A DNA stretch of 64,000 bases from Laetmonice hystrix (lineage: Eukaryota), in contig OZ249446.1 in assembly GCA_965235115.1 (NCBI GenBank), positions 21,266,001 through 21,330,000 of the forward strand, given 5' to 3'. Both the position numbers and the translations under genes were made by a program. The number at the start of each line of letters is the position of its first letter. The first letter of the stretch is position 1. The notes below the pieces were generated by a model, which saw only the letters and a program-made list of their open reading frames with translations, did not search any database and was not told the origin of the DNA. Shown one piece after another: positions 18,516 to 47,489 of the stretch.

Positions 18516-19063
18516 TTAGGCTACAATCTAGTAAAACTCAAAACCTGGGCTGTATCGATTTATTGAGATGCTGAGGCGATGTTTAGATAGTAGTTTAGAT
18601 AGTAGATCTTAGTTTGACTAATTACCGAATCTAAACATATTGCTTGGGTACTTAGGCGGTCAACCTTCATGGTTCAACAAGTTACAAGTTCAAGCCTAGG
18701 CCAGGGCTAGGGTTAATTTCTATGTTTGTATCAAATTGCATGGGCGTTTGTTAATTAGGTGTTTAGCCTGCATTATCCAATGCAATTATCTGAATAGAAT
18801 TGATTTTTGGGGCTGGTCGAGAGCAAGTCAAATGGTGTAAATCTAGTACCCATAGTGGGAGAGCGGGAGATAGCTGTGATATTTACGGGAGTCTCCCGCA
18901 CGTTGCGGGAGAGTTGGCAGGCTTGGACAAAATATACCAGTGATTAAACAGAATTTTGTGTTGTACAAGGCCATTGTAACAGGAATGATGGAAAGCTACA
19001 TTGTTTTGTATATTTTTTTCACACAGACCAGCTTTTGTCTCGGCTTCCTGTGTTGACAAAGTG

Positions 19064-24964: not shown

Positions 24965-27900
24965 ATGGGCAGCCAGTTGAGTGTCCCTGAGGAAGAGAGA
25001 ACGCTCTCTCATTCATCATCCATCTGGTATCAGTGTAAGTCGAACTTTTTATACTTAGGAAGTGTATATTTAGCCAATGCCAACGTCCAAATAAGATTAT
25101 CTTAGTTTGAGTAATGACCGAATCCAAGCAAATTGCTTGGATTAGGGTCAGGACTAGGGTTAGTTTTATTTTTGTCTCAAATTATGTGGTAATTAGGTGT
25201 TAATTAGATAGTACCCTAATTCATACCTGCCAACCCTTCCGCATTCTGCGGAATCTTTCCGCATTTGAATGAGGTATTCCGCATTCCGCATTACTCTCTA
25301 AATATTACGGAATCATAAAATTTACAGAATAAGTATAGATTCCCTCCAAATACATGTTAAATCTCTCGCTCATGGCAGAGTTTCACTGGCAAAAAGATCG
25401 TTTATGGTCCCTGCCATATAACTAGATCTCTAAACTAAGTTTATTAAATCAGAGTTGTGCTTTCTGTCAGTAATGGAGAGGAAGAGAGAGAGATGAATAA
25501 AAGAAAGGGGGCCCATATAAGTTATTTGGAGAGAATATCAAAAGTCAATTTGGGATGATTCCGGATTCTGTCGACCAAATGTTGGCAGGTATGCCCTATG
25601 AGTTATGTAATGATATGTAGTATGTAGATCCTTTGTAAGTTTGAACTCGGCCATAGATACAAAGTTTGGTTCCTTGGAGATGATGTAATGTTACGTTTAT
25701 CATTGCAGTAGCAGAATGCAGTATAGACAAAGTCATCATCGCGTTTGGCCATCTAGAAACCCGGCACCTGACTTCAGACAGATATGTCGAGCCAACAACA
25801 CTGTAAGAAGCTCAGATCTTTTCTTTCTCTGGGTGGAGAGAATTTGGCTTTGCCTCCTTTAAAATAACTTTTGCTTGCCATGGCACTGACATGTTTAAGG
25901 CCACTTCTGCCATGGCCCATGCTGATATTCAGGCATGTCAGTGTTTCAGAGATCCGCCCAATTTCCGAGAATTGAAATTGGCCCAAATCTGAGGAATAAA
26001 AGCCTAGCTAGGCCTAATTCAGAGCCCAAAAACATAGCATCAAGCGCATTTTTGCTGACACCATGCACACCTAGATATCTTCCATCAATACCGTGCCGTC
26101 CTGGACACCCTCACCGGCCTCGGAAGGGCCGAGGAAGAGCGTCAACACGTGCTTCTGTTTACAAAGTTTCAGCATCAGCGGAGAACTTTGCGTCCGCTAA
26201 AAATCTACGGAGTGAATGGTGTCTATCTGCTCTGCGATTGGCTAAAAATACATGGAAATTAAGACTTAAGTTGATACTATTTCCTCCAATGAGAACGCGT
26301 CGTTTATTCTCTGCCCTATTTGTAAACACAAATGTCATGGCGCCGACTGATGGATAGTGGTGCAAGCGTGTTGATCCACGGGATCCACGTATTCGTCTGG
26401 GTGTTACCCAAAATCTAAGCCAAAGGAATGGAAAAGTCTATTTGAAAAAATTCTATTTGGCCTAGTTGAGGGGATAAGAGGTGGTAGGTTTGATACCTAG
26501 GCTAAGCGAATCAGTCATGTGCACTAGTCGGCTGGCGGGCGTCTGGCTGACAGTGCCGGGAGAGGTGGTGTCGCTGCCTGGGGTGAGGTGTGAGTTGATG
26601 GGGGAAAACATTGCAAAATACGCCTTGCAGATCAGACAACCCAGACCTTGCCATTATCAGTCTGCCCCAAGTCTGGAGCAGTGATTAGGTCTGCCCAGCC
26701 TAAGATGGTTCCAAGTGAAAGTGAAAAAAATAATTGAGGATTTAATTTTTTTTTCTTAATTTAAAACAATTCTCCCCGGTTGAAAACCTTCATTTTTTTA
26801 TGTTTTTTTTTTTCAGTAAAATGGGGGGGGGGGGGGGTTATTACAGCTGCCAACAATTTTCAGAGAATTTTGGTCTGGGCCACTGACATGCCTGTGATAT
26901 TAAAATATGAAGGTTTAAAAAAAAATCCTCATCTATTCTCGAAAATCTGTTCAAAGAAATGAATGACTGCCATTTTTATCCATGTGCAGTGCTTTTGGGC
27001 TTCCATTTTCTGTCTCGACTGCAAGCAAGCTGGTGGGCATATTTACGGACAGACATGGCCGAGGTGACTGGAAGAGTTGTTTTGGTAAGTTCTAATTTTG
27101 GTTATAAAGAAAGTGTTGCATTGGGCCTTATTTCATAAAAAAGACTATTTTCCTTCAGACATACCACATCAGACATACATAAAGCAGTGTTCTCCACAGG
27201 GTCGGGCCAAGGTCGGGCGGCCCCATGTGACGAGCGCCGAAGGCGCGCGAAACGAGTGCCGAAGGCGCGAGCTGTTTGTTTGGGGGGGGGGGGTCTGGGG
27301 GTCTTCCCCCAGAAAATGTTGAAATGTAGAAGCCCGGAGATGCGATTTCCCGGCATCTGGGAGAAAAAATGACTGCTCTCGGAAGGCACCCCAATCGGGA
27401 TAGGCGAGTTTAGACGATTGGAATGGATTTTAAGGTCGGGCGGTCGGCCACCAAGGTCGGGCGGTCGTGACCAAGGTCGGGCGGGCCGCTGCCAAGGTCA
27501 GGCGGCCCGCCCAACCTTGGAGCCTTGTGGAGAACACTGATAAAGGAATTAAAGAATATCTCGCATTTTAATGACTTCAAAATGCAGACATGGGCTGTTA
27601 GGTTAGATAAAGCTTAGACTACATAAATTTATGCACAAATGTATACCCAGGGGCAATGAACTGAGGAATTTCATGGCATACCTGCCAACCATTCCGATTT
27701 GATTGGATTCGTTCCGATTTTCATGTTTCCAGATAGCAAAAAATTGGAACGTTCCAATTTTCGAATTTTCAGATCGCAATATATAAATCAAATAATGTGA
27801 ACTTTTTTATCAAAACAGCCTTTCTGTAGCTTTAAAAATGCCCCAAACCCAGGAGCTCATGGCAGCTCTGCATCCTGTACCCCTGTCGGGGCAGGGGTGC

Positions 27901-30900
27901 CAGAAGCAAATTATTATTGGGGGGGGGGGGGGCGAGAGAGCTGAAGCGAAAGTCATAGGCTACAACATGTCTAGTAAAGCAGGGTCGGAGGCCCTCCCCA
28001 AGAAAATTTTAAAAACTACATGCCCTTTTGAGGCAGGATTTTTTTATGTTTTGAAGGAGTGAATGAATAGATTACAATGTATCATTAGGACAATCGACCC
28101 AGTCTTTCACGCACCCAAGTCATAGTTTCAACAGACCTACTGTATGTGGAAAAACCTGCCTTTTTTCATTCATGATCACAGATTATTGGGGGGGGGGGGG
28201 CGGGGCGATGCCCCCCCCCAACCAGTTTATTGAGGGGGTAGTCGCCCCCCCTCCCCCCTATCCCCCCCCCCGGCGCCTATGGTCGGGGGCCTAATTGGAA
28301 CCCTCACAGGTAGTGCTCAGATTTCTGGTTTTCCAGTGATGGCTGGTATGTCATTGGTCAATGCCAGGTGAACAACCAGCCATGAGACGTTCACTTCATG
28401 GCAACAACAGGCAACTGGAATGTTAAATTTCATTTGATTTCTCCATTTCTTTGGACCCATTCATTGATTTTTATTGTCTAAGGCCTTATCTAACCTAACA
28501 GCCAATATCTGCATTTTGAAGTCATTGAAATGAGAGATCTATACTCTATGATTCTGTGATCTATTTCTTTTTGCTTACATTATTTTTGATTCAAACATTT
28601 TTTAAGATATTCTGGAAATAGCTTTGAGTGGTCTCCTATATCTTTGTACACTGACAGTGATGACTACAAAGGTGTTATTGGTGTGTGTTTTTGTCCTCAG
28701 AGGTGCTCGTGTTTCTGGTGGAGGGAGCCCCAGATGCCAAACTTCGCTTGCTGTTTGATATCGTAAGTACTTGTGACTTTGTGTGGCAGCAATTCGTTCT
28801 GAACAACACACTTGGAAGAAGGTTCATTCACTAATATGTAAGATATTTATTAACAACTTGTAACTAACTAGTAAACTAACTGGTTTACTGACATAGAGTG
28901 GATTTCAAAAACTTAGAAAAACATTTTAAATAGAATGATAGTTTTTCAAAAAAATCATAACAGCTCCTATTATAATATTTATCAATAATACAATAATACT
29001 GGGTGCTGACTAGCTCACTTAGGAATGATTGCTTCCTTTAATTAAAGGGGTTCTGTGTGATAAACTGATGTAATATTTTGGAACCAATTTAATACCTTAT
29101 TTTATTGGTATACATTATTTTATTATTTGGTCTGCAACATTTAGTATAAACCTTTTCACAGTTCCTGGATATAATTATCAGTGATTGCTGTGTGTTTTAA
29201 ACCGTAGTATTTAGTACAGGTCGGTTGAAGGTCAGTCATATTTCAAGGTACAGTTACTGTCGCTGCTTGGCTTATTATGTTATTGACTGATTTGCATGCT
29301 CTTTATTCATGCAGTCCCATTATAAATGGTAAACCGTTGGCTTTAATGGCTATTATTGAAAGGAAATCGGCATTTTGTTGTGGGGCGTGCCAGTAATGAA
29401 ATAAACTAGACTAGTGGAATGGAGATCAGGTCTAAAAACATCTTGCCAAGCATGGTACTTGGTAGTCGGATGGACGGACGCGCTTATTGAAACACCCTCC
29501 AGGGCCTGGTTCACGATCAGAAACAAATAAATTTTTATTAACTTTTAAAAATCGATGTTAACCAATCAGATTCAATCAAAATTGACCCAAGTTAAATTGA
29601 CTTGACTTTGAATCGGGCCCTGAACGTGGTCTTGACCCAAGTTAAATTGACTTGACTTTGAATCGGGCCCTGAACGTGGTCTTGACCCAAGTTAAATTGA
29701 CTTGACTTTGAATCGGGCCCTGAACGTGGTCTTGACCCAAGTTAAATTGACTTGACTTTGAATCGGGCCCTGAACGTGGTCTTGACCCAAGTTAAATTGA
29801 CTTGACTTTGAATCGGGCCCTGAACGTGGTCTTGACCCAAGTTAAATTGACTTGACTTTGAATCGGGCCCTGAACGTGGTCTTGACCCAAGTTAAATTGA
29901 CTTGACTTTGAATCGGGCCCTGAACGTGGTCTTAGAAAAAAATCATAAAGTTGCTAGGAATGGAGAGCGTTAATTGAGGATGTAAGGCATGGCAGGCTGT
30001 GATAGTTCTTAGAGAAATAAGGAAGTAAGCTTGCTTCAGATTATTGGTAACCTTAGACAGCATGTGACATAGACGGATGATCATATCATTTTGATCAAAT
30101 AACACTATTATATAGCATAAGAGCTATATATAGGGGATTGCTGTTAGCAGGAAACAAAGCCTGATACTAATGAGTAAGATTGTCAAAGAGATCCTCTCAA
30201 ACATTGTAAACAAATTACGAAAAGATTTTACAGCACTGTAAAGGTTGATTCATAATCTATTTGCTATGGTATCAAATGGCCACCAACCTACAAACTCAGA
30301 ACTAAGGACACTGCAAATGATGTCGTCGTCTGGCTGTCAAGACTACGAACCAGTGGCAATAGTTTCAGTGACCTAAAATTTTTCAGTCAGCGGAGGTAGG
30401 CTATTTAGCTGTGAACCAGGCTTTGTGCATCAAATTAGTGTGGTAACGAATCACAATTGGCCTTATTCCAAGGGATTTTTATATTGACAGGCCTGGGAAT
30501 AAAAGGTATGGATTTTTTCTTTCTGTGACTTTCAAATTTGCAATTTAAGCGACGTTTCCTTTGGAGCATATCTGAGATTATGGTACCGGTATGTCGTGTT
30601 TCTTGTGAGTAGGTGTTTAAAAATACTTGGTGTGGCTTCAAGCTTTTAGCTTGGTGTATATTTTTTATATACCCTGGTAGGGTACCCTGGTAGGGTATAT
30701 CTTCCTGTGATTATATGTGGTGGGGGCATGTTTTGCATGCGTTAAGGCCATTTAAAATTAATTTTTAGTTTTTCATCAGTAGATGTTGAAAAATTTGGCG
30801 GGGAGGGCATTTTATATTTTATATTTTATATTTTAAAATTTCACGACCTATCATGAAATAAGGTGATTTAAGTCCAATATTTTGTACAAAAAATCATCTG

Positions 30901-33900
30901 TATTCAATAAAACTAAATTACAATACAAAAATAGACCACTTTAGTTTTATACATGATCGGGAGATGGCGCGCGCACTCCGTCAACGATCTCTGGTGTATT
31001 CAAAGGTGAAAAAACGGACTTTTAAAGAAATATAAAATATTAAAAAAAATCGGGGCGGGCCTAAAAATCGGGACGGGCGGTGATGAAAAACTAAAAATTA
31101 ATTTTAAATGGCCTAAGACAAAGTCGAAAAAGTTTGAGAAAATTATTTTCTTGTTGAGTTAAGAGAAGCAGAAATTTACTGTTATATTCTGTATCAGGGG
31201 ACAACCGGCAACAAAGTAGTCTTTTGTGTCAAAAGTATCTGAGCCATGACTTAAACAAGTTGGGGGGGGGGGGGGGGGGCGAACATTAGATATTTATTAG
31301 GGTGGGGCTGGGTTTTTTCTTGGGAATATTTTTTTATTTCAAAGAAAGGACTGCCTCAATTTCAACCCTCATGGCAAAATTTTATTTATTTCACATGAGA
31401 CTAATTATTTATTTCCAGATACTCATAACACATATTTTTTTTTTGACATGGCCAGGAAGAATTTATATATTTCACCAATTTTCCACCAGAAATTATTTAT
31501 TTCCAAAAACACTCCTTAATATCTAATGGCCACCCCCTTAGACAGGCCAGTTTGAACACCAGTCACATAATTCTAGACATATGAGTTCTGGGACGTTGGC
31601 ATAGTGCCAAGGGCAATGGTAAATGAGAACTAAAAATAGAATTTAGGAACATGAAGAAAATACTTAAATATTTATTTTTCCAAAATTTAATCACTATACA
31701 TTAGTCTGAGATTATGCTAATTAGTGTGAAAACTTAAATTTCTATGAATTCCGTAATTCTAAAGTCTTTTGTCATGAATATTGTGAACATCAAGAGAAAG
31801 CAATCTTGTCAGATAAAATTTAAGGTGTCTTTTATCAGGGGTAAATGTATAGGACCAAAGAACATGAGCATACATGTGCATGATATACTACAGGACATAG
31901 TTGGTGAATTATAATTAGGTTAGAAATATAATGGTGGTTAGTACAGTCAGACCTCGTTAATCCGTGCTTCTGTAATCCGGAGACCTCACAATCCAAACAC
32001 CCTTTCTGGCAACCTCTTCTACCATTTTCTATTTGAAATGATTCAGTAATCCGTATATTTCACAATCCGAACACATTTTAATGGGCACCAAGCTGTTCGG
32101 ATAAACGAGGTCTGACTGTATATATATCTCTGTGAATTATTATGTTGTGCAAATGTTTTTGCCAAATCATTTTCTATGCGTTTTCTTTTGTCTTGTTTAT
32201 GAATCTATATCAGCTTTTCAAAAATGCATAAATCTGTCAGTAAATAAATATTTGTAGATCGTTGTCAGGATAGCAAGAACAATATAATTCTACCTATGTC
32301 TGTCTGCGTGGTCAACGTGGATTTTCACGTTAAACAGTAAAATAAATGTCATGTCAAACAGGCATGTTCTCTCATATGTTTGAAAGGAACTGTAATACAT
32401 TGTAGTGCCTTTCAGTTTAGATTAGGAAGATAGTACACTAGGCATCATGGTGATGAAAGGACAAGTCAGCGCTGCATAATAAATGATATCTTTGGTAACG
32501 CTTGGCGAGGTGTGATATTAATACCCTGTAAAGATCAATGTAGAGTAGTGTTGAAAGAGACCATAAAGTCATCAGCCTACCAATACCAGCGCTGGTTTAA
32601 TAGATAGCGAGCACGCGACCCTTTACACCTGTATCACTGACTCACCTGTTCCAAACGTTACACAGACCGGCTGGAAGCCAGAAGATGTGATCCCACGCTC
32701 TCAACTTGAGTCACTCATTACTCGCTTACTCATCAACACAGAGAGGTAAGTCAATCGAGTTAAACACAGGTCTTTTACCTGGGGGAAAATTAGTTTATTT
32801 GCTTTGAGTTAATGACATTGCCATTGGTGTGACTTCATCGTTTTGTGTGGGGTGTCTTATGGTGTGAGGTATGGGTGTCCTTGCCGTAATAACTACATAT
32901 ACCCCCCACCCCTCCCCCCACATCACCACGGCGACTTGGTATAAGGCAGGTACCATAGGCAGGCACTGTCAGCAGGGAAAAATGGCATTGGGGTCATTGC
33001 ATCCCAGAATAGATGCCAGTGTCCGTTGTGACGGTTGTCACAACTGTTCAATGATAAACCTTAATTATTTTATGAACCAGTTGTCCAGCACAGTGCATCT
33101 TTGAGTTTCTCAGAATTATTATGCAAGTTGTTTTGGCACATGAATTTTTTGAAAGTCTGACTGTCTAAGGGGCCGTCCATCATTTTCATCATTTTCACGA
33201 GCGTACAGAGAGTACTTCCTTCCAGACCCCCCTCCCCCCCCTAAAGAGTACACACCATCCGTGAAAAAAATGATGATGACTTTTTACGGTACCCTGGTAG
33301 TGGTGTTTCGTACCACTTGTCATCGTCCCATGAAGAGCCATCATAAAATGAAATGGAGACACACCTAGAAACCTGGATAGATCTATGCTTTTTAATTACA
33401 AAAATAAAACATCAACCTCACAAGATGTATTCCCGCATTTTTAAACGTCCAAAAATGTCAGAAAAAAGTAATTAGGCCTACGTCATCGGGTCTGCCGGAG
33501 AAGCTGTACAGAGCTAGCCAGCAGCGCGATATTTGATTATCGGTCGATTCGCACTCTGTCAGTTTTTTTGACTACAGTCTAGAGTCCAGTTATAATTATT
33601 TTTAATGTAATAAAATACTGATATAACGAATTCGGCTATAGCCAAATTACGTCTATAACGAAGGCAAATTTTCCCCAAACTGAGGATTTTCCCAGTTATA
33701 ACGAAGTAGTAGGCCTAATGTGTCACTCTAGTGGCCCAGACAGAATAATTTTCGACATGAATTAAAAGGTGGGCCCTGTCCCTCCCCACAAACTGATTTC
33801 TTTGAAATTTTCAATGACAATTCCCCCATATATCCGCCCCTTAATTCCGAAAATTTGGTTAAAAAATATCAAAACACAAGCACTCTAAATTCATAAAAGC

Positions 33901-36900
33901 CGCCTGCCGCCCGCCAGAGTCTATAATTCCCGACTATTAATGAATTAAAAGGGACGCCCTGTCCCTCCCCCTGAACCGATTTCTTTGAAATTGTCAGCAC
34001 CAATTCCCCAATATATCCGCCCTTAGATCTAAAAATTTGGTTAAAGAATATCGAGAACTGTATAAATGCTGAACTTAAAAACACAGGCACCCCAAACTCA
34101 GGTATAGGCCTGAGCCGCCCATGCACCAGAGTCTTATTATAGGCTAATTCCCGACATGAATTAAAAGGTGAGCTCTGTCCCTTCCCCTGAACCGATTTCT
34201 TTGAAATTCTCGGCACCCATTGCCCTATATATCCGCTCATAGATCTGAAAAATTGGTTAACGAACTGTATAAATGCTGAACTTATAAACACAGGCACCCC
34301 AAATTCAGATAGGCCTATACAAGACGCCCGCCGCTCTTGCAGGGCGAGAGCTCTGGCGGCAAATAGTAGGCCTAGGCCTATATATTTCATCATCATTTTT
34401 TTCATAAAAGCGTACGCAGGGTCTAGACCCCCTCCCCCCCTTAGTACGGTTTGTACGCTCGTGAAAATGATGAAAATGATGGACGGCCCCTAAAGAAATA
34501 ATGCAAATCTGAATAAGTTACATACATGTGTACAGTGGGTTTGTTGAAATTCTGTGTGAATGTTTCAGTCACCATCAGATACATGATTGATTAATTGTGA
34601 ATTTAGATAAATCTCACAACATCTTTATATGGACACTGTGGTGACTTTATTTGATTCCCTACACAGATGAATTGCTAGAATAGGGTAACCCACCCAAAGT
34701 ATTACGGGTATACTATAAATAAAATGTAATATCAAGGTTTTAGGGAAAGTTAGACAGGTGGGGGTGTGGTAGAAGTGGGCGTTACGAGACGTCTGTGTCG
34801 TATGTGGGTGTTTGTATGTGTGTATAAACGTCCTCTACCTTGTATGTACATAATTATCATTCTTGCTTTATGTACCAGGTACATTTCTGTAACAGGATAT
34901 AACGTTTACAGCGGCTATAGCTTTTATTTCTGAACGTGTTTTCACACACGTTTGTTTCACAGAATGTTTACATGCCCCAGGGCGTCAGGACAGGCCACTG
35001 AACTGATTTATTGACCGCTCTCACCTTCACTTTGACATCATTTGATATTCACATATGATCGCTATTTCCTCCCGTGTCGCAGTTTCTCTTGAATTCTAGC
35101 ACAATGGTATTGGGATCACTAATGGTTCAGTGAGACCGACAAAGTGAATGGGGAAGTGGTTTTTGTGCCTGTGATCGGCGCTGAGTGATGGGTCATTCAA
35201 TATTGATAAAGGAAGCGAATTCATCAATGACAAAAAACCTGGAACCATGGGAACCACCATGGCTTTGTCCAACACCTGTAGCTTCAGTGGTGAGAAGGTC
35301 AGCGGTTGAGAAACTTTTCCACTTCCATTCTTAATTGTAAGGGACGAACAAAATGTATGGAAAATTGTTCTGCTGATGACGGGGTCTTTGTGATAGTTTA
35401 CAATGATATGTCAATATTGACTGTTATTATGCGGTGAGAAGGTTATAGTGTGACGCCGAGTTTTTTTTAGGTTTGGTGGTGTTGTTGGTTACGGTCCAAT
35501 TTAATTAAAATTAGATCTTGGTATTCCCCTTCTGGGCTGTGCTCGCATGAAGCGCATGTGAAATAACTAATATCTAATGTTAATTAGATTGGTTACGGTA
35601 AATATACAGCGGTGACAGAGTATAACGAAAAACTGCAATTAAAATGGTGGGACTGAGGGGCAAATACCCAGAGGTGTGTGTGTGTGTGTGGGGGGGGGGG
35701 CTCACACATAAAGGTAAAAATAAATTAATGGTAGATTAATATATTAAAAAAAAAATGGATGATAAAATACAGGATTTTTGGTCCATGTTTGGAATAAGGT
35801 TGATAAGCAACGGAAATTCTGAGTGTTTATGTTTGAACTTGCTAAAACTGGGACCAGGTTAGGACTGGTTGGTGTCCGTCCTCAGGTGACGTGTGTGTGG
35901 CCCATCCCGAGGCGATTCCCCCTCCCCCCGTCCCCACGTCCCCACGTCCCCGTCCTCCCTGTCCCTGTCTTTCCCCTCCCCGTCCCCGTCCTCCTCCCTG
36001 TCCCCGTCCTCCTCCCTGTCCCCGTCCTCCTCCCCGTCCTCCTCCTTGTCCCCGTCCTCCCCCCTGTCCTCCTCCCTGTCCCCGTCCTCCCCCTCCCCCT
36101 CCTGCTGTATTACGTGTTCCTTTGGTCCCAAACCCGAAACCTCACTTGTCTTATCCACATGACTGCCAGCCTTCTACATTGTGGGTCACTGGTTGTCATG
36201 GAAACGGGAAAACAACCATGGTGACTCGGGTTGATTAGTTCCGTTAATACCAATTATTGTGGCTTGGTCAATGAAAGGGTTTTAGGGCCATCACACTTTT
36301 CATTTATTAATGTACACCTGTAGGAGAGATGCCTGGGTAGGTAGGTAGGTTGTATATACGTGACGTACCGAGGGGACTTTAATTATATGTGTTATGTGAC
36401 AACAGTGTGATGTGTACAGGTGGCATTGTTCGGCCAGATTACCTTTTGGTGACCAGAAAAACCGAGTGTAACTTGCTGTTATTTCTGTGGAGTTTCAAGC
36501 TGACGTCAATATATATATTAAGGCGTTTAATGAATGTAACCCTAATAACACGCCAAGAATTTCTTTCTTTCAGGATTGTCAAGGCGGATGGCCAACTTCA
36601 GTTGACAGGTAAGTCCGAGGGATACTGGTTCTCCATCAATAGTTGTTATAGCAGCAGGTAAAAGAAATATGAAATGAATGGATTGTGTTCATGTCGCTTT
36701 TCATACACAGAGTACAGCTGTCACTGGTGTTATCATTGTTTCGTTATCTAGGACGTAGTTTACCTGATCTTGAGTACCTGTTGTGTTGACTGGTATCTCA
36801 TTAAGCAGCACATTTTTACGGCCTGTGATGCCTACTGCAAAGATTGACATTTTGTATTGAATTGCTCAAGGTTAGATTTTTTGAAGGGGGGTTCACACTT

Positions 36901-39900
36901 TCACGATAACGACCACGATATAGCTATCGTAGCTCTATCGTGATCTATCGTGATGCTATCGTGATATATCGCGGTCTATCGCGGTGTATCGGCATACTTG
37001 TCCTGAAAAGCTACGTAAATTTTGAACATGTTTAAAAATTACGTAGTGCTATCGTGCTGGCTGTATTCGTAGCTCTGTCGTAGGTCAACCGTAGCTCCAT
37101 CGTAGCTCTATCGTAGCTTTATTGGCAAAGTCGTAGTGTTATCATCACGCTGGAACACGACAGTGCCGACAATAACGATAGTTACGATAGTATCACCATA
37201 GAGGTACGATAGAGCTAGGAATACATACGACAGACCACGACAGCGTCACGAAGTACCGCGACAGGGCTACGATAGATCACGACAGTAATCCGATAGCGGT
37301 ACGACATGTACGACAGTCGTACTGCACTCGTAGACATCGTAGCTTTGTCGTCATATATCGTAGCTCTGTCGTACAATATCGTAGCTCTGTCGTCATATGT
37401 CGTAGTGCTGTCCTGACTGTCGTAGCGCTATTGTCATTTTCGTAGCTCTGTCGTCCAAATCGTAGGTCTGTCGTAGCTAGGTCGGCAAAGTCGCAGCATT
37501 GTCGTAGCTCGGCCGTAGCGCTATCGGCCTGATTTTCCGTAGCTCTATCGTAACGGTCTCGTAGTGCAGTCGTAGCTCAGTCGTACATGTCGTACATGTC
37601 GTGATTGTCGTAGGTCTGTCGCCACTGTTGTAGCACTGTCGTAACACTGTCGTAGCTCTATTTTCATTGTCGCCATCGACATTTCTTAGCACTATCGTAG
37701 CTGTATCGTGGTTATCGCAGCGCTATCGCAGCAATCGTAGCGCAAACGTAGCGCTATCGTGCTCATCATGGTCAATTTGAAACATTAATATCGTGGTCTC
37801 TCGTGGTCTGTCGTAAATGCCTTTTGTCGTGGTCTATCGTGGTCTATCGTGGTCGTAGTGCTATCGTGAAAGTGTGAAAATGTAGGAGAAATGAAGCGGA
37901 GGAATTTCACTGCGAGGCGAAGGAATTTCAGATTGTCTGTGAAGTACAACAGTTGAAAACAACTGATTTCAACACCATTCATTCAAAAAACACATTGTTT
38001 TGATGTAATGGATGGAGTTTTTTTTTGTCACAGGAATCTTCGATGTTCACACCAACATCGAAATAACCGTGAATGAGTTGGTGGGAGAAATCGAAGATTT
38101 TTCTGCCGGTGCGGGGATAACATACGATGTGTTAGAGCAATGGCTTATCGAGTCTACAGCTATCAGTTTTGACATGTTTAGCAAGGTAGGTTATAAAATT
38201 AGAGAATTTTAGAAAGAAATATTGCTCTTTTAGTGCTCCTAACTCATTCAAATTCTGACAAGTTTCAAAATTGATTTTTTTTTGCAGGATGACTTTCAGG
38301 CCACATCAAATTCTACTCCTGCCAGACTGAGCAGTGGAAAGGGTTGTTACCAATGGGATCAGTTACCGAGTGACAAGAGTGAGACCGTGCCATCCTCTCG
38401 GAGTAAACACGCGGTCACGTTTTACAATGGATTCGTATACCTGTATGGTGGACGAGACGGAAACCTCGGACTCAAAGATCTCTGGAAGTTTAACATTGGT
38501 GAGAAACTTGTCAAATTAACAAATTGTCAATATCATTCACAGTTAAAGTCCTGGCCCCGGTTTCAAGAAGGTGTTTAGGTTAACTAAGTTGGTTAAGATG
38601 AATTTGAACCATAGATTGACCAATCAGGAAACAGAGAATTAACCAATCTTGGTTAAAGTCAGAGTTAACCACGATTTTAACCAACATAGTTAACCACTTT
38701 CTCGAAACCGGGGCCTGACTGTCAGGTGATGCCTAGCCATGCCTGCAGAAATTCTCTCCATCGATTTAAAAATGTACTGAATTGTGATGATCTGTGCTTG
38801 ATTCCTACAGGCACCAACAGGTGGCAGCAGCTGTTGTGTCGGGGGGACAGGCCCCCCTTATTGCAGGATCATACCATGGTGGCACAGAAGGTAGAATTTT
38901 ACTCTTCCCTCTCAAAAATCTTGTTAATCTTACTGAAAGCTTCAAGTTGAGAAGAGTTTGTAGGTGTGGAATTTTGCTTTGTTTTTAGACAATTTATAAT
39001 CAGTTTCCTTAAAGGGAATAGAAAAGTTCAAACTATCAATATAAGGGTGTTCAGCATGAACAAGCTTGTTCTTACCTAAAATTCTGTGATTATCTGATCT
39101 TTAATAAAGGAATAATCAACCGAAATGTAGAGACATTCTCCCGCTGGCTTCGTCGGTTTGTTTACCCTATTTGGCCCTTATCTCAATCTAATAATAGATA
39201 TAGCTCCCGCTGTCTCGCGTGGGAAATAGCGAATGACCCGGGCGGTATTTTTAAAAAGTCGCCGTAGACAGTGTTCCACTTATGGGTGTGACCTTAGACA
39301 CTTTATATGGTGTTACTGGTGTTCAAAGGTACGTTAGTGAGGAACTTTTCTATTCCCTTTAAGACACTGTTTGATATGAACATTTTTGGACATTTTCAGG
39401 GGAAACTGTATGTTTTTGGTGGAGCATTTTCCAGTACTCACGAAGCACCCCTCTGGATCCTATCACTTGGTAAGATAAACTATATCAGTGAAATTCAAAC
39501 ATTAGACTCAGTTGTAATATCCAATCGAATTTAGTATTCTTCCATATTGAGTGATAGAATCTATCTGTCTATCTGGGAGTTTATTCTAGCTGCCATGGTG
39601 TGTAATTATCTCTTGCAGACTCTCTGGTCTGGCAGAAACATGACGTAGACGGTGAAGTCATGGTGCCGTGCGGTCGTCGTGGTCATACGGCCGTCGTTGT
39701 TGATAACGCCATGCACGTCTATGGTGGTTTCCTTGATCTGAAAGGATCGTCAAGTGAATTCTGGACTTTTGATTTTGGTAAGATGAGAAAGGTATATTGG
39801 TACTGAATAGAGTAACTCTGGGGGATTTTTTGAACATTTCCTGCAGCAAAGCCGAAAGTGTTAAAAAAATGGCTTTTCAAGTTCATAATTTATTATTTTT

Positions 39901-42900
39901 CAACTTTTTGATTTGCACCAGGTATTGAAATGTGGCATTTGGCGCACAGTGCGTCGATGACAGATGAGGGTCCTGGCGGTCGCCATGGACATGCAGCTGT
40001 TGTCCATGACAACGAGATGTGGATATTTGGTGGCATGTGTGACCTACACCCACGAAATGACCTCTGGAAATGGAACTTTGGTTAATAAATTTCCTTTATT
40101 TTATTTCGAATAATGTTCATTTTTTACGATGGTTCTACAATTGGTTACTTTTACATAAATTTTAAAAAAAAATCATACATAATATTTAATTTACATTTTT
40201 TTCAGATATTGATATTATGGTATTGGTAATGTGTGCCTCATTACTGGTATTGGTAATGTGTGCCTCATTACTGGTATTGTTATTGTGTGCCTCATTACTG
40301 GTATTGGTAATGTGTGCCTCATTACTGGTATTGGTAATGTGTGCCTCATTACTGGTATTGGTAATGTGTGCCTCATTACTGGTATTGGTAATGTGTGCCT
40401 CATTACTGGTATTGGTAATGTGTGCCTCATCATTGGTAATGTGTGCCTCATTACTGGTATTGGTAATGTGTGCCTCATTACTGGTATTGTTATTGTGTGC
40501 CTCATTACTGGTATTGTTAATGTGTGCCTCATTACTGGTATTGGTAATGTGTGCCTCATTACTGATATTGGTAATGTGTGCCTCATTACTGGTATTGGTA
40601 ATGTGTGCCTCATTACTGGTATTGGTAATGTGTGCCTCATTACTGGTATTGGTAATGTGTGCCTCATTACTGGTAATGTGTGCCTCATTACTGGTATTGG
40701 TAATGTGTGCCTCATTACTGGTATTAGTAATGTGTGCCTCATTCCCACAATATTGTAAAACTTTATGAAAATGCCTAAACTGCTGATTCACAGGTTTGCG
40801 GAAATGGCACAAGGTGAAAAGTAAGAACGGACCACATGGATTGACTGGGCACTCCATGAGCAAGGTAGAGCAATGTCGTAATATATTTCCGCATAATTTT
40901 GTTGTCCGATGTTAAGAGGTGAAAATTCTTCCGTAATTTTCCTTCATTCATAATCTGTCACTGTGGTTTCAGATTTCTGGAGGAATGTTGGTGTATGGTG
41001 GCGAAAATGTCGGAAATCTCCAGGGAGACTTGTGGAAGTTTACATTTGGTGAGTGCCGTCAGAATTTGTTGTCGCTCTCATTGCCTTTTTGATCCGTTCG
41101 AAAAATAGCATCAGAAAGTGGAAGTTAACCCACAGAATTTCTTGAACATGTTGTGTTACTGTTAACATTATGCATGTTCTGTTAGATATTTAAAAGTTTT
41201 TGATATACTTGTAGATACATCACAAGTTACGATTTTAAGCTTAGAATGTCCTACATATCAAAGGATAAATCCCCCTTGGTAAAATCTCTGCGGAATTTAG
41301 CCAAGTTAAAATCAATCTCTTTTCCTAGCCCCACACCGAACCCTAACCCACCTAACTACAGTCACCATACCTCTCTTTTGACAGCAAGCCAGACATGGCA
41401 GAAGATTCCATTTGGGGAAGACATGCCATTAGCCAGGAGTCAACATCAAGCTCTCGTCATCCCTGCCTTCCTGGTCAGCCAAGCCTGGTCCACGCCGACC
41501 AGTGAACGGGCACGGTCCGCGCCGTACTTACAGGATAAGGCTTTGAACTTTAACCTCCAAGAGGACCGCCCCTTTTCAAGCCCACCTTCTATGACCAATG
41601 AGAAACAGTCTTTCAGTTTCAAGAACAAGGTTTTGCCAGCTGATTCTGCCACGGAGCTGCTGATTGGTCCCTTTTCAGATGAGGAGGAATCAGCTAGAAA
41701 AGATAGTAAATTTAAAGAATCAATCCAGATGGATGCAATGAGTCCTCAAAGCCCTGTCTCTCCAGTCAAAGGCGGAAGAGAGAAAAGGAATATTTTAGAA
41801 TGTTTCTCGGAGTCTGTGAGCTTTCAGGACTCTGAGGTTTGTTATAGTTTATTAAAACAAACAGGGGATGCTCAAGTGACCCTTGACCTGAAGGGGACTG
41901 CAATCTTCAAAAAAACCGGTCCATTGCCGGGACATATTGAACCCACGTGTAAAAGTAAAACGGGATCAGTGTCCCGCTTACTGTCCTCGGAAAGTGAGTC
42001 ATCAGAGAATGGTCTCGATAACCCTTCGTTTGTCCTTGATACGAGTGGAAACTTCTCCAGGAGGGTCGGCGACAAGGAAGAATACTGTCCGGTCAAGAAG
42101 AGCAAAAAACACTACTTGGCCAATCGCGGTTGTGTTTCCATGGAGATGAAGAGTGCATCTACAGAGAGCATACTGAGTATGAGCCATAACCCAGCACTTC
42201 CTCCACCATACTGGATGCATGCCAGCAACTACCAAAACCAAGACTTGAAAAACGTCGTCCACGACCCCTTGAAAAGTCACTCGGAGTCCCTTCTACATGA
42301 CCTTGGCGGCATCGAGGTCACAAGAATTGACCCAGACCGGGGGCTTTGGCCACACCAAGTCTTTCCTGAAGACCTTTTTATTGAAGACCTAGAATATTAC
42401 GATAATGACCAGTTGTGCCTAAGCAGCGAATCAGCATTTAGTAGAGATGACGCACATTCGCAGTCTAGCGAATCAAAATTAAGGGCTCAATCGGAGGCAA
42501 ACCTCTGTGTCCCCAAACAGACAGCACTGCCTGACTTACTCATTGGTTTATCTGAATCCAGTTTGAATCAACCTGTTCAAAATAACTGGTTTACTACAGG
42601 AAGAGGACTGTCTAGAGGCACGGTAAAAAATAACTTACAGACCCAAGCAGTATGTGCAGAACAGGAAACCAGCAATAAACTTCGATGGTCTGACCCACAA
42701 AATGGAATCAGTTACAGTCAAGGGAGAGAGACAAATATTTCAGACAAAATGAAGAGAGAAGTACTGGTGACAAGGGACAATAGAGAATCGGAAAATATAC
42801 AGGCTCCCTCTACTGGGCCAGTGAAGGACTTTTTAAAACTTAGGGTAAGTAAACAAAAATTTCAACAAAATTATCAAATATTAAAAACAAGAATGGTTAG

Positions 42901-43191
42901 AAGAACATAAAGGCATAAAAAGCTATCGAAAATTCGACCAAGACATTTTAATATTGGTCCCCCAGGTCTAATACCCTGATTTATTTATTTATTTTTTGTT
43001 TTTATTGGTTATTTTTGTTATTGCTGATGACTCTATGTACACGTATTTCATGGTTACAGTGTCTTCGTCGTTCTGACACCACCCATATCTTAGTGTTTGG
43101 GGGCAAGGATTCAGAGTCTCTCAACATCGGAATCAAATCACTCCCAGTGTGGCATCTCGATGTGACAACTGGTAACCACAACAACAGGTAA
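24965..43191 (+). CDS. Predicted N-myristoylated, degenerate EF-hand (NCS/recoverin-like) plus kelch-repeat protein, ~1001 aa
   Basis: 16 GT-AG exons, all phase-compatible, totalling 3006 nt: 24965-25034, 25709-25802, 26990-27084, 28701-28762, 32666-32745, 36574-36608, 38034-38185, 38288-38498, 38811-38890, 39400-39469, 39619-39777, 39922-40080, 40794-40864, 40973-41048, 41385-42844, 43060-43191 (TAA). The protein starts MGSQLS. Kelch motifs: SRSKHAV..VYLYGGRDG..DLWKF, GRRGHTAV..MHVYGG, GRHGHAAV..MWIFGG, MLVYGG..DLWKF, HILVFGG. The kelch part is secure; joining it to the N-terminal exons is inferred from phase and open frame. Confidence 0.75.
25222..25593. mobile_element. hAT-like MITE
   Basis: TIR CATACCTGCCAAC / GTTGGCAGGTATG; degenerate 8-bp flanks ccctaatt/ccctatga. 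Related solo ends occur near 18915 and 27678. Confidence 0.8.
25930..26894. mobile_element. hAT-like non-autonomous element (965 bp) with 7-bp TSD
   Basis: 14-bp TIR CAGGCATGTCAGTG; TSD TGATATT at 25923-25929 and 26895-26901. Confidence 0.85.
27185..27539. mobile_element. hAT-like MITE with 6-bp TSD
   Basis: TIR CAGTGTTCTCCACA; TSD ATAAAG at 27179-27184 and 27540-27545. Confidence 0.9.
29503..29619. mobile_element. Short Harbinger-like MITE whose right end is tandemly amplified
   Basis: Imperfect TIR GGCCTGGTTCA / TGAATCGGGCC; flanks CAG...CTG. Confidence 0.6.
29582..29933. repeat. 50-bp tandem repeat, 7 identical copies
   Basis: Unit ttgacccaagttaaattgacttgactttgaatcgggccctgaacgtggtc. Confidence 0.97.
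30746..31113. mobile_element. PIF/Harbinger-like MITE (TAA TSD)
   Basis: TIR GGCCATTTAAAATTAATTTTTAGTTTTTCATCA; TAA on both sides. Confidence 0.9.
31944..32118. mobile_element. Tc1/mariner-type MITE (TA TSD), copy 1
   Basis: TIR CAGTCAGACCTCG; TA flanks; homologous to 48584-48759. Confidence 0.88.
33169..34490. mobile_element. PIF/Harbinger-like non-autonomous element (1.3 kb)
   Basis: ~38-bp TIR GGGGCCGTCCATCATTTTCATCATTTTCACGAGCGTAC; TAA TSD; three degenerate ~200-bp internal repeats at ~33750-34330. Confidence 0.9.
35915..36105. repeat. Polypyrimidine (C-rich) low-complexity microsatellite
   Basis: Repeated cctccccgtccccgt-type units; the ORFs over it are compositional artefacts. Confidence 0.85.
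36886..37885. mobile_element. Harbinger-like non-autonomous element with tcgtag-rich interior
   Basis: Subterminal inverted repeats ttcacactttcacgata / tatcgtgaaagtgtgaa; termini degraded. Confidence 0.75.
38554..38714. mobile_element. Harbinger-like MITE with perfect CTG TSD
   Basis: TIR GCCCCGGTTTC; CTG at 38551-38553 and 38715-38717. Confidence 0.88.
40217..40745. repeat. 27-bp minisatellite in a kelch-region intron
   Basis: Unit gtaatgtgtgcctcattactggtattg, about 20 copies including shortened variants. Confidence 0.97.
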
Positions 43192-45049
43192 CCATGGCAA
43201 CGGCATGGGTTGATGGGAACAACACCGAGATGATATTTACAATTAATATTTGGTCAGATTTGTTGTCGGAACCAAACCAAACTGAACTCAGATAAACAGG
43301 ATAATAGAAAGACCAAAAAAAGAGTGAGTTTGACCAAAGTTTGTCCAACCAAAGACGACACTATTTTTTTAAGAAGATGATGTGGTGCTATCATCAAGCT
43401 GATAATAATTCAGACCACCGTCCAATTAAAACTCATTTTATTGTAAAAAGAAAATTAAAAACAATGTAAAAAAAGGGAAGGAGTCTGGCTCAAAGCAAAG
43501 ATTGAAAGACTTGTATGGTTTCAGAGTTTCCTGGTGCATTGAATTTTGATGGATTGATTTTTGTGTGTTTATATATTATGTTGTATTTGTAATAGACAGC
43601 ATTAATCGGAGCCGATAATTTATCTGTAGGTATTCTTTTGTTTTTATTATTCATTTACAGACATTTATTTAGAAGCTTACTCACCAAATGACTATGTTAT
43701 GTGTATATTTCATCAAATGTTGTGCAATATGTTAGTTTTCTTGTTAGCCCAGAGAGATATATTGAAGAAAAGTATATTCATACACACCAAGTATTACTGT
43801 GATAACTTTGTTATGTAGAGATAGCCGGAAACTTGAAGAGTAATGCCAAAATTATTTCTTGATAGTTTTAATATGATTCATATATGTGATATTGTGTAAA
43901 CTTCCCAAAGACCGAAGTACAAAAGTTCAAACAGTATTTGAGCAAGTTAAAATTCTGTGAGAACCTTTTTCATATTTAGGTAGAGATCAGTTTACCAAAG
44001 TTGAAGAGGTAATTTGGTTGCATTAGGTTTACAATGAGTGTTCTGATTGCTTAAACAGGCTGGAAGTCATGTTGTCATCTTTAATTGACACTGGAAAAAT
44101 TGGCTTCCATTCTCTTCGTACGCATTTGACACTCCAACTACGCTGATACGTTCAGTCCTTCATATCCTACGCAAAAACCTAGAAATGGCTATTTACCGTA
44201 AAAATCACCTTTTCACCGCTCATTTCTGCTCAAAATGTGCTCATAATGCATCTGAAACAACCCTTAATTTCATTTTTTTCCCGTACCTAATCTTGCGTCC
44301 TGGCATGCACGTGCCCTGGCTGTGCCACTTTGGGGCATGGGGCTGAATGTTGCTTCGCAAAAATTGTGAAATGTTGGCTTTTTGAATTTAGAGGCATGAA
44401 GAAATTGCAAATGGTGATGGATTTTCGACTGCCGGCCCAAGGCTGTTGTTTGTGAATAAAATAAAACAAACCAAAAAAGATTCTTTTGTGATATACCGGT
44501 GTAGCGACACATCAGTCAGTAGGCCTACTAGTCTTTTAGTGAGTTTAATATGGCTTCTGAATTTTGACATGCATGTAGACCTGATGAAGAAATCGGGAGA
44601 ATAGGTACACAAATATGTGTTTTTGTAAAAAAGAGATTAGTAAATTCACTCACATTGTTAAGAGCGTGCAGGCGTTAAATTCAGAATGTATCTTGCTGAT
44701 AACGTCTGAAATACATGTATCACTAAACATTGTTCACTCAGGGTTGTCAAAACTTACAGGTTTTCTGCCTGCCACATTGGCCACCCAAACTTCTACTCAG
44801 GACAGAGGAATCTTTTGGGGCATTGAGCGATGGACTTTTATTGTAGTTAATGATAATGGTGAGGTGAATTGAAAAGTGAAAACAATGGTTGTGGAGTACA
44901 ATGTATTAAAAAGGTTCTGCATTTTAGTGTGTGATATCAGTGGAGAAAACCATGAGTGTCAGAGATTGTAATACATGAGTAGGTTTTCTGGCATTCATTG
45001 TTAGGGGTCAAGTGTAATATTGATGGCATATGTGATGCATTGCTTGTTG

Positions 45050-45725
45050 TGACGGGTGTAAACTTGACGGGAGGTTTGCTCCATTGATGAAGCGATTAGA
45101 GATTGTGAAGGGTGTAATGTAAACTTGACGGGAGTTTTGCTCCATTGATGGAGCGATTAGAGATTGTGACGGGTGTAATGTAAACTTGACGGGAGGTTTG
45201 CTCCATTGATGGAGCGATTAGAGATTGTGACGGGTGTAATGTAAACTTGACGGGAGGTTTGCTCCATTGATGGAGCGATTAGAGATTGTGACGGGTGTAA
45301 TGTAAACTTGACGGGAGGTTTGCTCCATTGATGGAGCGATTAGAGATTGTGACGGGTGTAATGTAAACTTGACGGGAGTTTTGCTCCATTGATGGAGCGA
45401 TTAGAGATTGTGACGGGTGTAATGTAAACTTGACGGGAGGTTTGCTCCATTGATGAAGCTATTAGAGATTGTGACGGGTGTAATGTAAACTTGACGGGAG
45501 GTTTGCTCCATTGATGGAGCGATTAGAGATTGTGACGGGTGTAATGTAAACTTGACAGAAGTTTTGCTCCATTGATGGAGCGATTAGAGATTTTGACGGG
45601 TGTAATGTAAACTTGACGGGAGGTTTGCTCCATTGATGGAGCGATTAGAGATTTTGACGGGTGTAATGTAAACTTGACGGGAGGTTTGCTCCATTGATGG
45701 AGCGATTAGAGATTTTGACGGGTGA
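45050..45725. repeat. 61-bp tandem repeat (~11 copies) between the kelch gene and VPS41
   Basis: Unit taaacttgacgggaggtttgctccattgatggagcgattagagattgtgacgggtgtaatg. Confidence 0.97.
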
Positions 45726-47489
45726 GACGTAAACTCAGTGGACATTTTACAGAGTTAAAAGGTTTTGATGAATCTGTTGTAGACTGTGATTGGTTAACAC
45801 AGATTTTGAAGATTCTGTTTGATGAACTGTTGATTTTCTGTTGAATAGATTAGTTTCAATGACTTATATTCCGTTTCTGTTGCAATGTGTCATGAAATGG
45901 TGTCATGCAATGATAATATAAACAGAAAATAAAGATGTTTTACCAAGTTTTAACACAACCTTTATAGTTTGCCTTTAAAAATGTTATACCTAAAGTTCAT
46001 AGTATTTTCTAGTGGCGCATGTATCTAATACACATATGGAAATGGAAATTTTGAAATTTACACAGGACAATTCGTCCAGTATTCATCTGTACGCACGTAA
46101 GTGAAAACATGATGGAACAAGATTTAGTTGTGTTCAGATTGAATGAAGCCTTATAATACTCGCCAAGTTCTGAGGTTGCTCTTAAAATCTTCCAGGTGAT
46201 AAATTGAGCATGTTTCAGCGGGAACAAATTGATTCTTAGTAAGACGGGCCCCTGTTACTAAGAATGTCACTCCCCAAATCAGGGACATATTGATTGGGGA
46301 CATGTCCCCAACACTTTCAATGGAGGGACTTTTTAATAAGACACCTCACAACGGGGATACCATGATCTGGGGACTTTGGTGGGGATTTTGCTGGCGATCA
46401 TCGTTAGTAAGACAGGTCCCAAAATGGTTGGAAGGCCTCATTCTGGAGGTCATTGCTAAATTATTACTATGGAAACATGGAATCATCTGAGTAGATAGAC
46501 ATTTATTCATCTCCATGACACGTGACAAACGAGGTTCTGAGAGACATAACATAAACATTCACAACCAAAGTTAACTTGAATCTCATACGTGTACTGGTAG
46601 TTCGCAAGTTAACGTCACGCATCACTGCACATCCCCCCAGGATATAATACATGTACATAGGTATCCCAGCTCACGTCAAACCTAATAAAAACGTTTTATT
46701 CATACAGTATGACGTCCAAAAACGTTTAGTAAACGTTCTTTTCTCGCTGGGATAGTAATTTGTCAAAAATATCACATTTCCGCCCTCTCAGGACGAACGA
46801 GAACATTTATAATGTTAGTCACACCAAGAAAAGTTCAAGTCGTGGCGGTTGACAAAACCATTGCACGGTCAATATTCAGAGTTTTACAATCTTACATGAA
46901 ATCGGCCCTGCCTTACGTGATTTAATAATTTACAGTGGTCTCCCAAATCTGTAAGGCTATGCCGTCCATCTGTCAGACTTATCACATGACAGATGTTTCT
47001 TGGATCAGAAAGCAACAAAAACAAAACTTCCCATGGCCAAAAACATATCCCAGCATTAAATCATTATCAACGATGTGAAAGATCGAGCAACCCTCGCCAG
47101 AGTCGGCTGGAATGTCCATCCTTTACGTAACAAGCAATAACTGTACAAGTATACCACAACTGACCAAGAAAAATGCTACCCGCTAATAATTCAGAGTAAT
47201 TCTGCAGTTTTTCATGAATTTGTAACTGAAGCCACTGTGAGTCAAGCAGCTAGGGGTCCACAAGGGATCGGGAAAGACCTGTCCCGACCCCCTGACCCCT
47301 CCTCCTCTTTGGCAGTTTTCCCCCTCGTACCGGTTTCTCTTTTCCCCTTCCCCAAACAAAACCTCATAATGATCTCTTCTTATTTTCTTATTTCTGTAAA
47401 ATGTGGGAGAGACCTGTGGCACATATTCAGTGACACTCTGTGTCGTTTGTTAGAGCGTAGACCTATTGCATGCCATCGCTAATGCTTTT

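Follow-up and report, generated by a model that had tools for sequence, protein, structure and literature searches.

A putative myristoylated NCS-like head fused to a kelch propeller in Laetmonice hystrix, a predicted member of a conserved and uncharacterized metazoan protein family

Introduction

The neuronal calcium sensor (NCS) proteins are stand-alone calcium sensors that act upon separate targets. Together with calaxin (EFCAB1), the members of this family, which include NCS-1/frequenin, hippocalcin, neurocalcin, the GCAPs and the KChIPs, are characterized by a chain of ~190–200 amino acids (aa), four helix-loop-helix units and a myristoylation consensus. The current study concerns a gene of Laetmonice hystrix whose predicted N-terminal region shares these features, yet is continuous with a six-bladed kelch propeller. 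The gene is located in a 64,000-nt stretch of contig OZ249446.1 (positions 21,266,001 to 21,330,000), hereafter referred to as the window. All coordinates are positions in this window and refer to the + strand unless stated otherwise; the DNA is eukaryotic and its introns are of the GT-AG type.

The closest counterparts of this gene are found among public predicted proteins. A full head followed by kelch repeats is present in Glandiceps talaboti (XP_077978700.1, LOC144434118), Ptychodera flava, Amphiura filiformis, Stylophora pistillata (LOC111332386), Actinostola and a eukprot entry, and partial heads are found in Lingula anatina (LOC106180011), Saccoglossus and Trichoplax. Together with the window species, the head-plus-propeller arrangement ranges over the Cnidaria, Placozoa, Brachiopoda, Echinodermata (a brittle star) and Hemichordata. 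Judging from these predictions, the fused architecture is old and already resides in the databases under the name “uncharacterized protein”. An initial annotation of the window had raised the possibility that such a fusion is undescribed. A full-text literature search revealed no publication on kelch repeats that carry an EF-hand or NCS head, but the fusion as such is already predicted, unnamed, in at least five phyla. The available comparisons support the view that the window gene is a new member of a conserved and uncharacterized metazoan family, which has apparently never been studied.

Results

We consider it likely, as one joint reading, that positions 24965-43191 (+) constitute a single protein-coding gene of 16 coding exons encoding 1018 aa, that residues 1-196 form an NCS-type globular head of four EF-hand-like units, linked to the NCS proteins through a family profile, and that this head is fused to a kelch propeller. 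The junctions of this model are predicted from sequence and homology. The coding exons are as follows:

24965..25034, + strand, 70 nt: coding exon 1, with the ATG at 24965, MGSQLS as MGxxxS N-myristoylation consensus, and a GTAAGT donor
25709..25802, + strand, 94 nt: coding exon 2, helix region of the first (cryptic) EF unit, with a CAG acceptor and a GTAAGA donor, phase-correct
26990..27084, + strand, 95 nt: coding exon 3, EF2 region with the degenerate loop TDRHGRGDWKSC
28701..28762, + strand, 62 nt: coding exon 4, helix linking EF2 to EF3, EVLVFLVEGAPDAKLRLLFDI, aligned to the family profile
32666..32745, + strand, 80 nt: coding exon 5, degenerate EF3 loop and exiting helix
36574..36608, + strand, 35 nt: coding micro-exon 6, IVKADGQLQLT, with a CAG acceptor and a CAG/GTAAGT donor
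38034..38185, + strand, 152 nt: coding exon 7, EF4 region, stop-free and ending in phase 0
38288..38498, + strand, 211 nt: kelch exon 1, linker, closing strand and blade 1, without Met, with Pfam Kelch matches
38811..38890, + strand, 80 nt: kelch exon 2, supported by tblastn with the Glandiceps orthologue
39400..39469, + strand, 70 nt: kelch exon 3, supported by tblastn with the Glandiceps orthologue
39619..39777, + strand, 159 nt: kelch exon 4, blade 3, with the acceptor at 39619 set by orthologue tblastn, and Pfam Kelch matches
39922..40080, + strand, 159 nt: kelch exon 5, blade 4, from Pfam Kelch and orthologue tblastn
40794..40864, + strand, 71 nt: kelch exon 6, first half of blade 5, from Glandiceps tblastn, splice sites and phase checked
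40973..41048, + strand, 76 nt: kelch exon 7, second half of blade 5, from Glandiceps tblastn, splice sites and phase checked
41385..42895, + strand, 1511 nt: large exon, first strand of blade 6 followed by ~480 Ser-rich aa, within an open frame of 554 codons
43060..43191, + strand, 132 nt including the stop at 43189-43191: last coding exon, rest of blade 6, ..ILVFGGKD..VWHLDV..

The seven head exons were first proposed in the initial annotation, which spliced them in phase over 13 kb into the first kelch exon. We recovered all seven, with lengths of 35-152 nt, at or near the places it had given, and their 588 nt (24965-38185) yield the expected 196 aa starting with MGSQLS. The chain finishes in phase 0 and the first kelch exon opens in phase 0 at 38288. 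Each of the seven acceptors consists of a pyrimidine tract followed by AG (CAG in six cases, AAG in one), the one at 38288 having a T-rich tract and CAG, while the five donors that use GTAAGT account for five of the six GTAAGT hexamers found on the + strand of 24965-38287 (13.3 kb). It is also evident that most of the head escapes detection by open reading frame (ORF), as had been remarked from the outset, with only exons 1, 4 and 7 contained within ORFs of at least 40 aa. Individual exons were placed using the family. Exon 7 is the best single-fragment match of the family profile in 15000-38300 and, when the Glandiceps protein was used in tblastn, aligned in collinear order with the first kelch exon, and the 35-nt micro-exon was the top choice among 181 phase-compatible candidates. 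For exon 3, an acceptor at 27026 (59 nt) was rejected, as it yields a head of 184 aa with a 12-column gap relative to the orthologues; the acceptor at 26990 supplies exactly the 12 missing aa and raises the profile score from 29.5 to 40.2 bits.

The principal support for this exon chain comes from a profile built from nine orthologue N-termini, with the window left out. The spliced 196-aa head matches this profile at 40.2 bits (E-value 1.5e-14), with window residues 1-195 aligned to profile positions 1-200. As a control, we assembled 3000 random chains from exon 1 plus six in-frame, GT-AG-bounded, stop-free segments of the same region, the best of which reached 7.7 bits against the same profile. 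The seven-exon chain is not a chance product. Similarly, blastp to the Ptychodera N-terminus aligns window residues 1-165 with residues 1-162. The ORF of exon 7 gave no candidate in a word-based search of proteins. When representatives were searched exhaustively with the first kelch exon, giant multi-kelch proteins prevailed among the matches, and blastp served to pick out the orthologues.

As the first kelch exon encodes no Met, the propeller has no start of its own there; the only Mets within residues 1-330 are M1, M193 and M289, and the frame of the exon is closed just upstream. In addition, the good donor of exon 7 and the strong acceptor of the kelch exon lie 102 nt apart, both in phase 0. 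The same join occurs in predicted proteins of at least eight species from at least five phyla, and the Lingula head joins its first kelch exon likewise. These observations bear directly upon the alternative that the locus comprises two genes, namely a stand-alone NCS-like gene made of exons 1-7, which terminates within the intron that follows 38185, and a kelch gene transcribed from a promoter of its own. Retention of the intron after exon 7 would lead to a stop eight codons on (..FSKVGYKIREF*), which makes a 204-aa product formally possible, and many orthologue models are kelch-only. However, a separate kelch gene is difficult to reconcile with a Met-free, upstream-closed first exon, with the well-matched splice sites on either side of the 102-nt gap and with a join that recurs in five phyla, so we regard two genes as most improbable. 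Instead, a myristoylation-consensus, NCS-like head fused to a kelch propeller is supported because the predicted splicing is phase-correct, the kelch exon is Met-free, fused orthologues exist, and profile and fold both place the head among the NCS proteins.

The initial annotation had suggested comparing related genomes to see if the two modules are joined elsewhere, and they are, both in the fused predicted proteins and in the exon plan of Lingula, the nearest relative examined in this respect (locus L001, LFEI02000582.1). In Lingula and the window, exon 2 has 94 nt, exon 3 has 95 nt and exon 4 has ~62 nt, with matching phases. Two of the Lingula exons are unannotated. The first (L001:8259-8313) encodes MGIQHS.. 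and ends in phase 1, as does exon 1 of the window, and the second (L001:8890-8983) encodes the first EF helix, again with 94 nt and the phases seen in the window. An annotated Lingula micro-exon, ISQLEFYNN, sits where the window has its 35-nt exon. Lingula differs in that its counterpart of window exon 7 is split into two exons. The Lingula reference protein starts with MVHVF, joined to exon 3, and omits both of the MG-start exons; the public model thus probably lacks the true, putatively myristoylated start.

When examining the distribution of the family, it is apparent that many models consist of the propeller without a head. Such models are found for crinoids, sea stars, an urchin, amphioxus, insects, a spider, a nemertean, Capitella, a bivalve and a lungfish, whereas tetrapods were absent among the family matches obtained. 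No head-like ORF occurs in the 3 kb that separate the Capitella gene from its neighbour, so that head loss is real in at least one lineage; in other lineages, the head-less models could possibly result from missed exons. The statement in the initial annotation that kelch proteins of this kind stand alone is therefore accurate for some lineages, such as that of Capitella.

The head-less models also raise a further alternative, in which the fusion is just one isoform and a further promoter, located within the 13 kb of the head region, drives expression of a head-less or head-truncated kelch protein. This would agree with the Lingula RefSeq model, which skips the upstream MG-exons of its locus, and with the sea star, crinoid and insect models, which comprise only the kelch part. 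Such kelch-only models have a Met of their own immediately ahead of the first strand. The alternative is compatible with the fusion itself. Conversely, no alternative ATG-containing first exon was found in phase with 38288 upstream of the Met-free kelch exon, and truncated models in other species may be annotation gaps. We consider a second isoform of this type conceivable, if rather unlikely.

Given a fused protein, the next issue is the nature of its head. The NCS-like character proposed in the initial annotation is borne out by the orthologues, in both profile and fold. Among PDB sequences, the family head profile matches calaxin (2.1e-20), hippocalcin-like protein 1 (HPCAL1; 3.5e-17) and NCS-1 (7.7e-17), followed by neurocalcin, the KChIPs, calcineurin B, CBLs, GCAPs and recoverin. 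An AlphaFold (AF2) model of the Ptychodera head, with a predicted local distance difference test score (pLDDT) of 76 and a predicted template modelling score (pTM) of 0.72, has as its best match the myristoylated apo NCS1 structure 2l2e (template modelling (TM) score 0.58/0.65); next come NCS-1, GCAP1, hippocalcin, frequenin-2, calcineurin B and calaxin. When compared by fold with reviewed proteins, the same model retrieves neurocalcin, NCS-1, calcineurin B and the EF region of USP32, in line with the likeness to the degenerate EF module of USP32 that had been pointed out beforehand. In the heads of Stylophora, Actinostola and P0169, the Pfam EF-hand scores above its curated cut-off (40-48 bits for the cnidarian heads), and it is weaker in those of Ptychodera and Amphiura. 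On this profile and model evidence, the orthologue head domain is of the NCS type. The window head is linked to this type through the profile, as it matches the orthologue profile and the profile in turn retrieves NCS proteins. The N-terminus provides a putative myristoylation site, with Gly2, Ser6 and neither Pro nor a charge at position 3 of MGSQLS, while the orthologues start with MGGELS, MGAELS, MGSELS, MGQDLS, MGQSLT or MGQEFN, which gives the pattern MG[AGSQ][EQSD][LF][SNT].

To read the calcium loops, we were guided by the family profile together with sequences of cnidarians and hemichordates. For EF2, the loop is TDRHGRGDWKSC in the window, DRDGDGVINWRE in Ptychodera and DKDRNGHIDRDE in Stylophora; for EF3, it is DITGWKPEDVIP in the window and DLDGTDGVSVSE in Stylophora; and the EF4 region of the window reads DFSAGAGITYDV. 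In the window EF2, none of positions 1, 5 and 12 is acidic and the position-3 Asp and the position-6 Gly are kept, whereas EF3 and EF4 are both devoid of the position-12 Glu and EF3 also lacks acidic residues at positions 1 and 5. Not one of the four window loops combines a position-12 Glu with acidic residues at positions 1, 3 and 5. The ligands had been described as mostly lost, which accords with these degenerate loops, and the window head probably no longer binds calcium. In the cnidarian and most hemichordate orthologues, EF2 is canonical, with or without EF3. We infer that the ancestral head bound calcium and, because of these canonical loops, that the ancestral protein was probably a calcium-myristoyl switch fused to its own effector.

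Two alternatives are pertinent to this degeneration. Firstly, the head could still sense calcium or another metal through non-canonical loops. EF loops of this kind that bind calcium are known, EF2 does retain its position-3 Asp and position-6 Gly, and the ADGQLQL of the 35-nt exon resembles the middle of an EF loop. However, no loop offers a position-12 bidentate Glu/Asp plus acidic residues at 1, 3 and 5, and no exon has a Pfam EF-hand match, compared with the 40-48 bits of the cnidarian heads, which makes metal sensing improbable. Secondly, the head exons could be a decaying relic that is perhaps skipped or non-functional, as might be suspected from four loops without their usual ligands and from a head identity of 17-22% compared with 45-53% for the propeller. 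Yet, in all seven exons the frame is open and the splice sites conform to the consensus, both the hydrophobic helix pattern and the MGxxxS start persist across the full profile, and the propeller depends upon the head exons for its start codon. As pseudo-EF-hand domains with a retained structural role are common, we find a relic very improbable.

The remainder of the protein is more readily recognized. Kelch_1, Kelch_2, Kelch_3 and Kelch_4 of Pfam exceed their cut-offs on single exons, and six blades can be counted by alignment to orthologues, with residues 197 to ~497 supplying blades 1-5 and the first strand of blade 6. The ~480 Ser-rich residues that follow, probably disordered, precede the last exon, which supplies the remaining strands of blade 6. 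The large exon product is 43% identical to a 520-aa ORF of a relative, and the C-terminal motif also ends the orthologues of Saccoglossus, Tubulanus, amphioxus, Stylophora and beetles. In the AlphaFold model of the amphioxus orthologue, the propeller has a pLDDT of ~90, the insert <50 and the C-terminal 30 aa form two strands at ~80. From this model and the conserved C-terminus, it would follow that the sixth blade is closed across a long disordered loop. Directly behind the propeller, the window protein carries two RxxSxP motifs ~20 residues apart (residues 513-518 and 533-538), in the forms R-x-x-S-[AV]-P-x-L and R-P-x-S-S-P. The motifs are kept in most of the bilaterian orthologues listed, with the pair conserved from annelid and nemertean to echinoderms and hemichordates. 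RxxpSxP is a form of 14-3-3 site, and the pair look like phospho-dependent sites of the 14-3-3 type. Pfam found nothing on the large and last exons, and BTB was not seen in the orthologues either.

Among solved structures, the propeller of the Ptychodera orthologue is closest to that of LZTR1 (2e-33, PDB 9mey), and matches to KLHDC10, KLHDC3, FBXO42 and KLHDC2, propellers of the same Pfam groupings (PF24681 and PF24981), are likewise significant. All five serve cullin-RING ligases as substrate-recognition modules. Identity between the window propeller and those of family members is 44-53% (53% for Lingula), and in a tree the family forms a clade separate from LZTR1 with a support of 100/100. 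The orthologue propeller also matches the N-terminal kelch domain of the outer-arm dynein alpha heavy chain (7kzm_A, 1.4e-16), and calaxin, the top PDB match of the head, is the outer-arm dynein calcium sensor; this may be a coincidence.

Searches for RNA runs of this species yielded none recorded as such. Four sequencing runs from one sample were mapped over 40760-44900. Three cover this region evenly, as genomic DNA would. The fourth, a small run termed X4, covers 41419-42760, 43089-44060 and 44307-44900 with a depth that climbs toward the 3' end, and leaves uncovered 40760-41418 and 42761-43088, the stretches that hold introns, plus the two small blade-5 exons. The type of this run is not on record, and its pattern is no more than a hint of RNA with a long 3' untranslated region (UTR), tentatively assigned as follows:

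43192..44900, + strand: probable 3' UTR (tentative), with contigs of run X4 over 43089-44060 and 44307-44900

There appear to be no further exons after 43191, because the orthologues end with the C-terminal motif and the X4 contigs run straight through. Additional exons past a donor-like CAG/GTAACC that overlaps the stop at 43189-43191 were considered and rejected, with no kelch-like ORF present downstream. In the genomic runs, word depth at 44096-44373 is 1900-6200 compared with ~30-70 around it, with loose ends at 44118, 44216-44220, 44307 and 44362; this segment of the probable 3' UTR corresponds to a dispersed element of high copy number.

The upstream neighbour at 19001-20947 (+) has a 396-aa ORF and a further 125-aa ORF that ends in a SNARE-like heptad segment (..RRMKRLL). 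It looks like a gene of the SNAP47 type and ends ~4 kb before the ATG at 24965. Downstream, the minus strand of 48352-50212 contains 3' exons of VPS41 (RING-H2-like FHCHHVYHEDCLP), tail to tail with the kelch gene. A 124-kb contig of a relative has the same order, with kelch ORFs, the 520-aa ORF and a TPR_Vps41 fragment on the opposite strand.

Several tandem repeats lie in and near the gene. The intron between head exons 4 and 5 holds a 50-bp repeat (29582-29933) of 7.0 copies that are 100% identical, which suggests a very recent expansion or an assembly collapse. A C/T-rich imperfect repeat with units of 8-48 bp (35921-36102), in the intron before the 35-nt exon, gives rise on either strand to proline-rich ORFs (up to 133 aa) that are misleading, and a 27-bp minisatellite (40214-40743; 20 copies, 93% matches), in the intron between kelch exons 5 and 6, yields spurious ORFs of 175-225 aa in four frames. 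Beyond the gene, ~12 tandem copies of a 61-bp unit (45008-45745) appear on the minus strand as a series of 36-aa ORFs that are nearly identical.

Discussion

The window gene can be accommodated, if tentatively, in a broader scheme, in which an ancient metazoan family would join an NCS-type calcium-myristoyl switch to its own effector, a kelch propeller of the substrate-recognition type whose last blade is closed across a phospho-regulated loop, and in which the switch of the window species has become calcium-blind and is either always on or always off. This scheme may well be incorrect in one or more of its parts. If it holds, the myristoylated head would hold the propeller at a membrane, where the propeller could recruit a partner protein, and the two RxxSxP sites behind the propeller might regulate it in a phospho-dependent, 14-3-3-type manner. 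A calcium-blind head would then presumably act as a constitutive lipid anchor or docking module.

Several results weigh against the fusion of an NCS-type head with a propeller and against the scheme drawn from it. Head identity to the orthologues is just 17-22%, and Pfam has no match on any individual head exon. The 44-aa segment that the initial annotation had aligned to NCS-1 did not hold up, as phmmer with this segment against PDB gave no NCS protein and the likeness is not significant by itself. The NCS fold was obtained for orthologues and carried over to the window head through the profile match. Some orthologue models have no head, and a head-less isoform from another start may exist in the window species. 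No junction-spanning contig was obtained from the four runs over 40760-44900, none of which is recorded as RNA. Lastly, myristoylation, the loss of calcium binding, a location at the membrane, a partner protein of the propeller and binding by 14-3-3 are proposals drawn from sequence features.

If correct, a fused family conserved between cnidarians, Trichoplax and hemichordates would place a sensor and its effector on a single chain and would point to a membrane-tethered kelch adaptor that nobody has studied. The window head would be a natural variant in which all calcium sites are lost, and thus a useful built-in control. Small head exons are evidently easily missed, as in the Lingula reference model. 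The architecture is already contained in public predicted proteins, and the present result is consequently a matter of correct annotation instead of the discovery of a new kind of protein.

Comparison with known systems places the gene as follows. The family orthologues, of which XP_077978700.1 is typical, have the same MGxxx[ST] start, a ~200-aa NCS-like head, blades 1-5 plus one strand, a long and presumably disordered insert with two RxxSxP motifs, and a C-terminal ..FGGK..W.. piece, and differ from the window protein in that its head is far more diverged, with degeneration of all EF loops. Members of the NCS family are separate proteins in which EF2 and EF3, and in some cases EF4, bind calcium, whereas the window head is fused, has no intact loop and lacks the CPxG signature of NCS EF1. 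The N-terminal EF region of USP32 is similarly a degenerate EF module fronting a larger protein (rank 10 in the fold search, residues 173-353), although its partner domain is a ubiquitin hydrolase and the likeness is at the fold level only (TM ~0.3). With regard to the propeller, blade 1 is very similar to that of LZTR1, the closest solved propeller by sequence, but LZTR1 carries two BTB-BACK domains after its propeller, which are absent from the window gene, and belongs to a separate clade. KLHDC2, KLHDC3, KLHDC10 and FBXO42 are also six-bladed kelch proteins, serving as substrate-receptor propellers of cullin-RING ligases; an F-box was not seen in the window gene, BC/Cul2-box motifs not having been searched for. 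In contrast to the window protein, these four have neither a putatively myristoylated EF head nor a split sixth blade.

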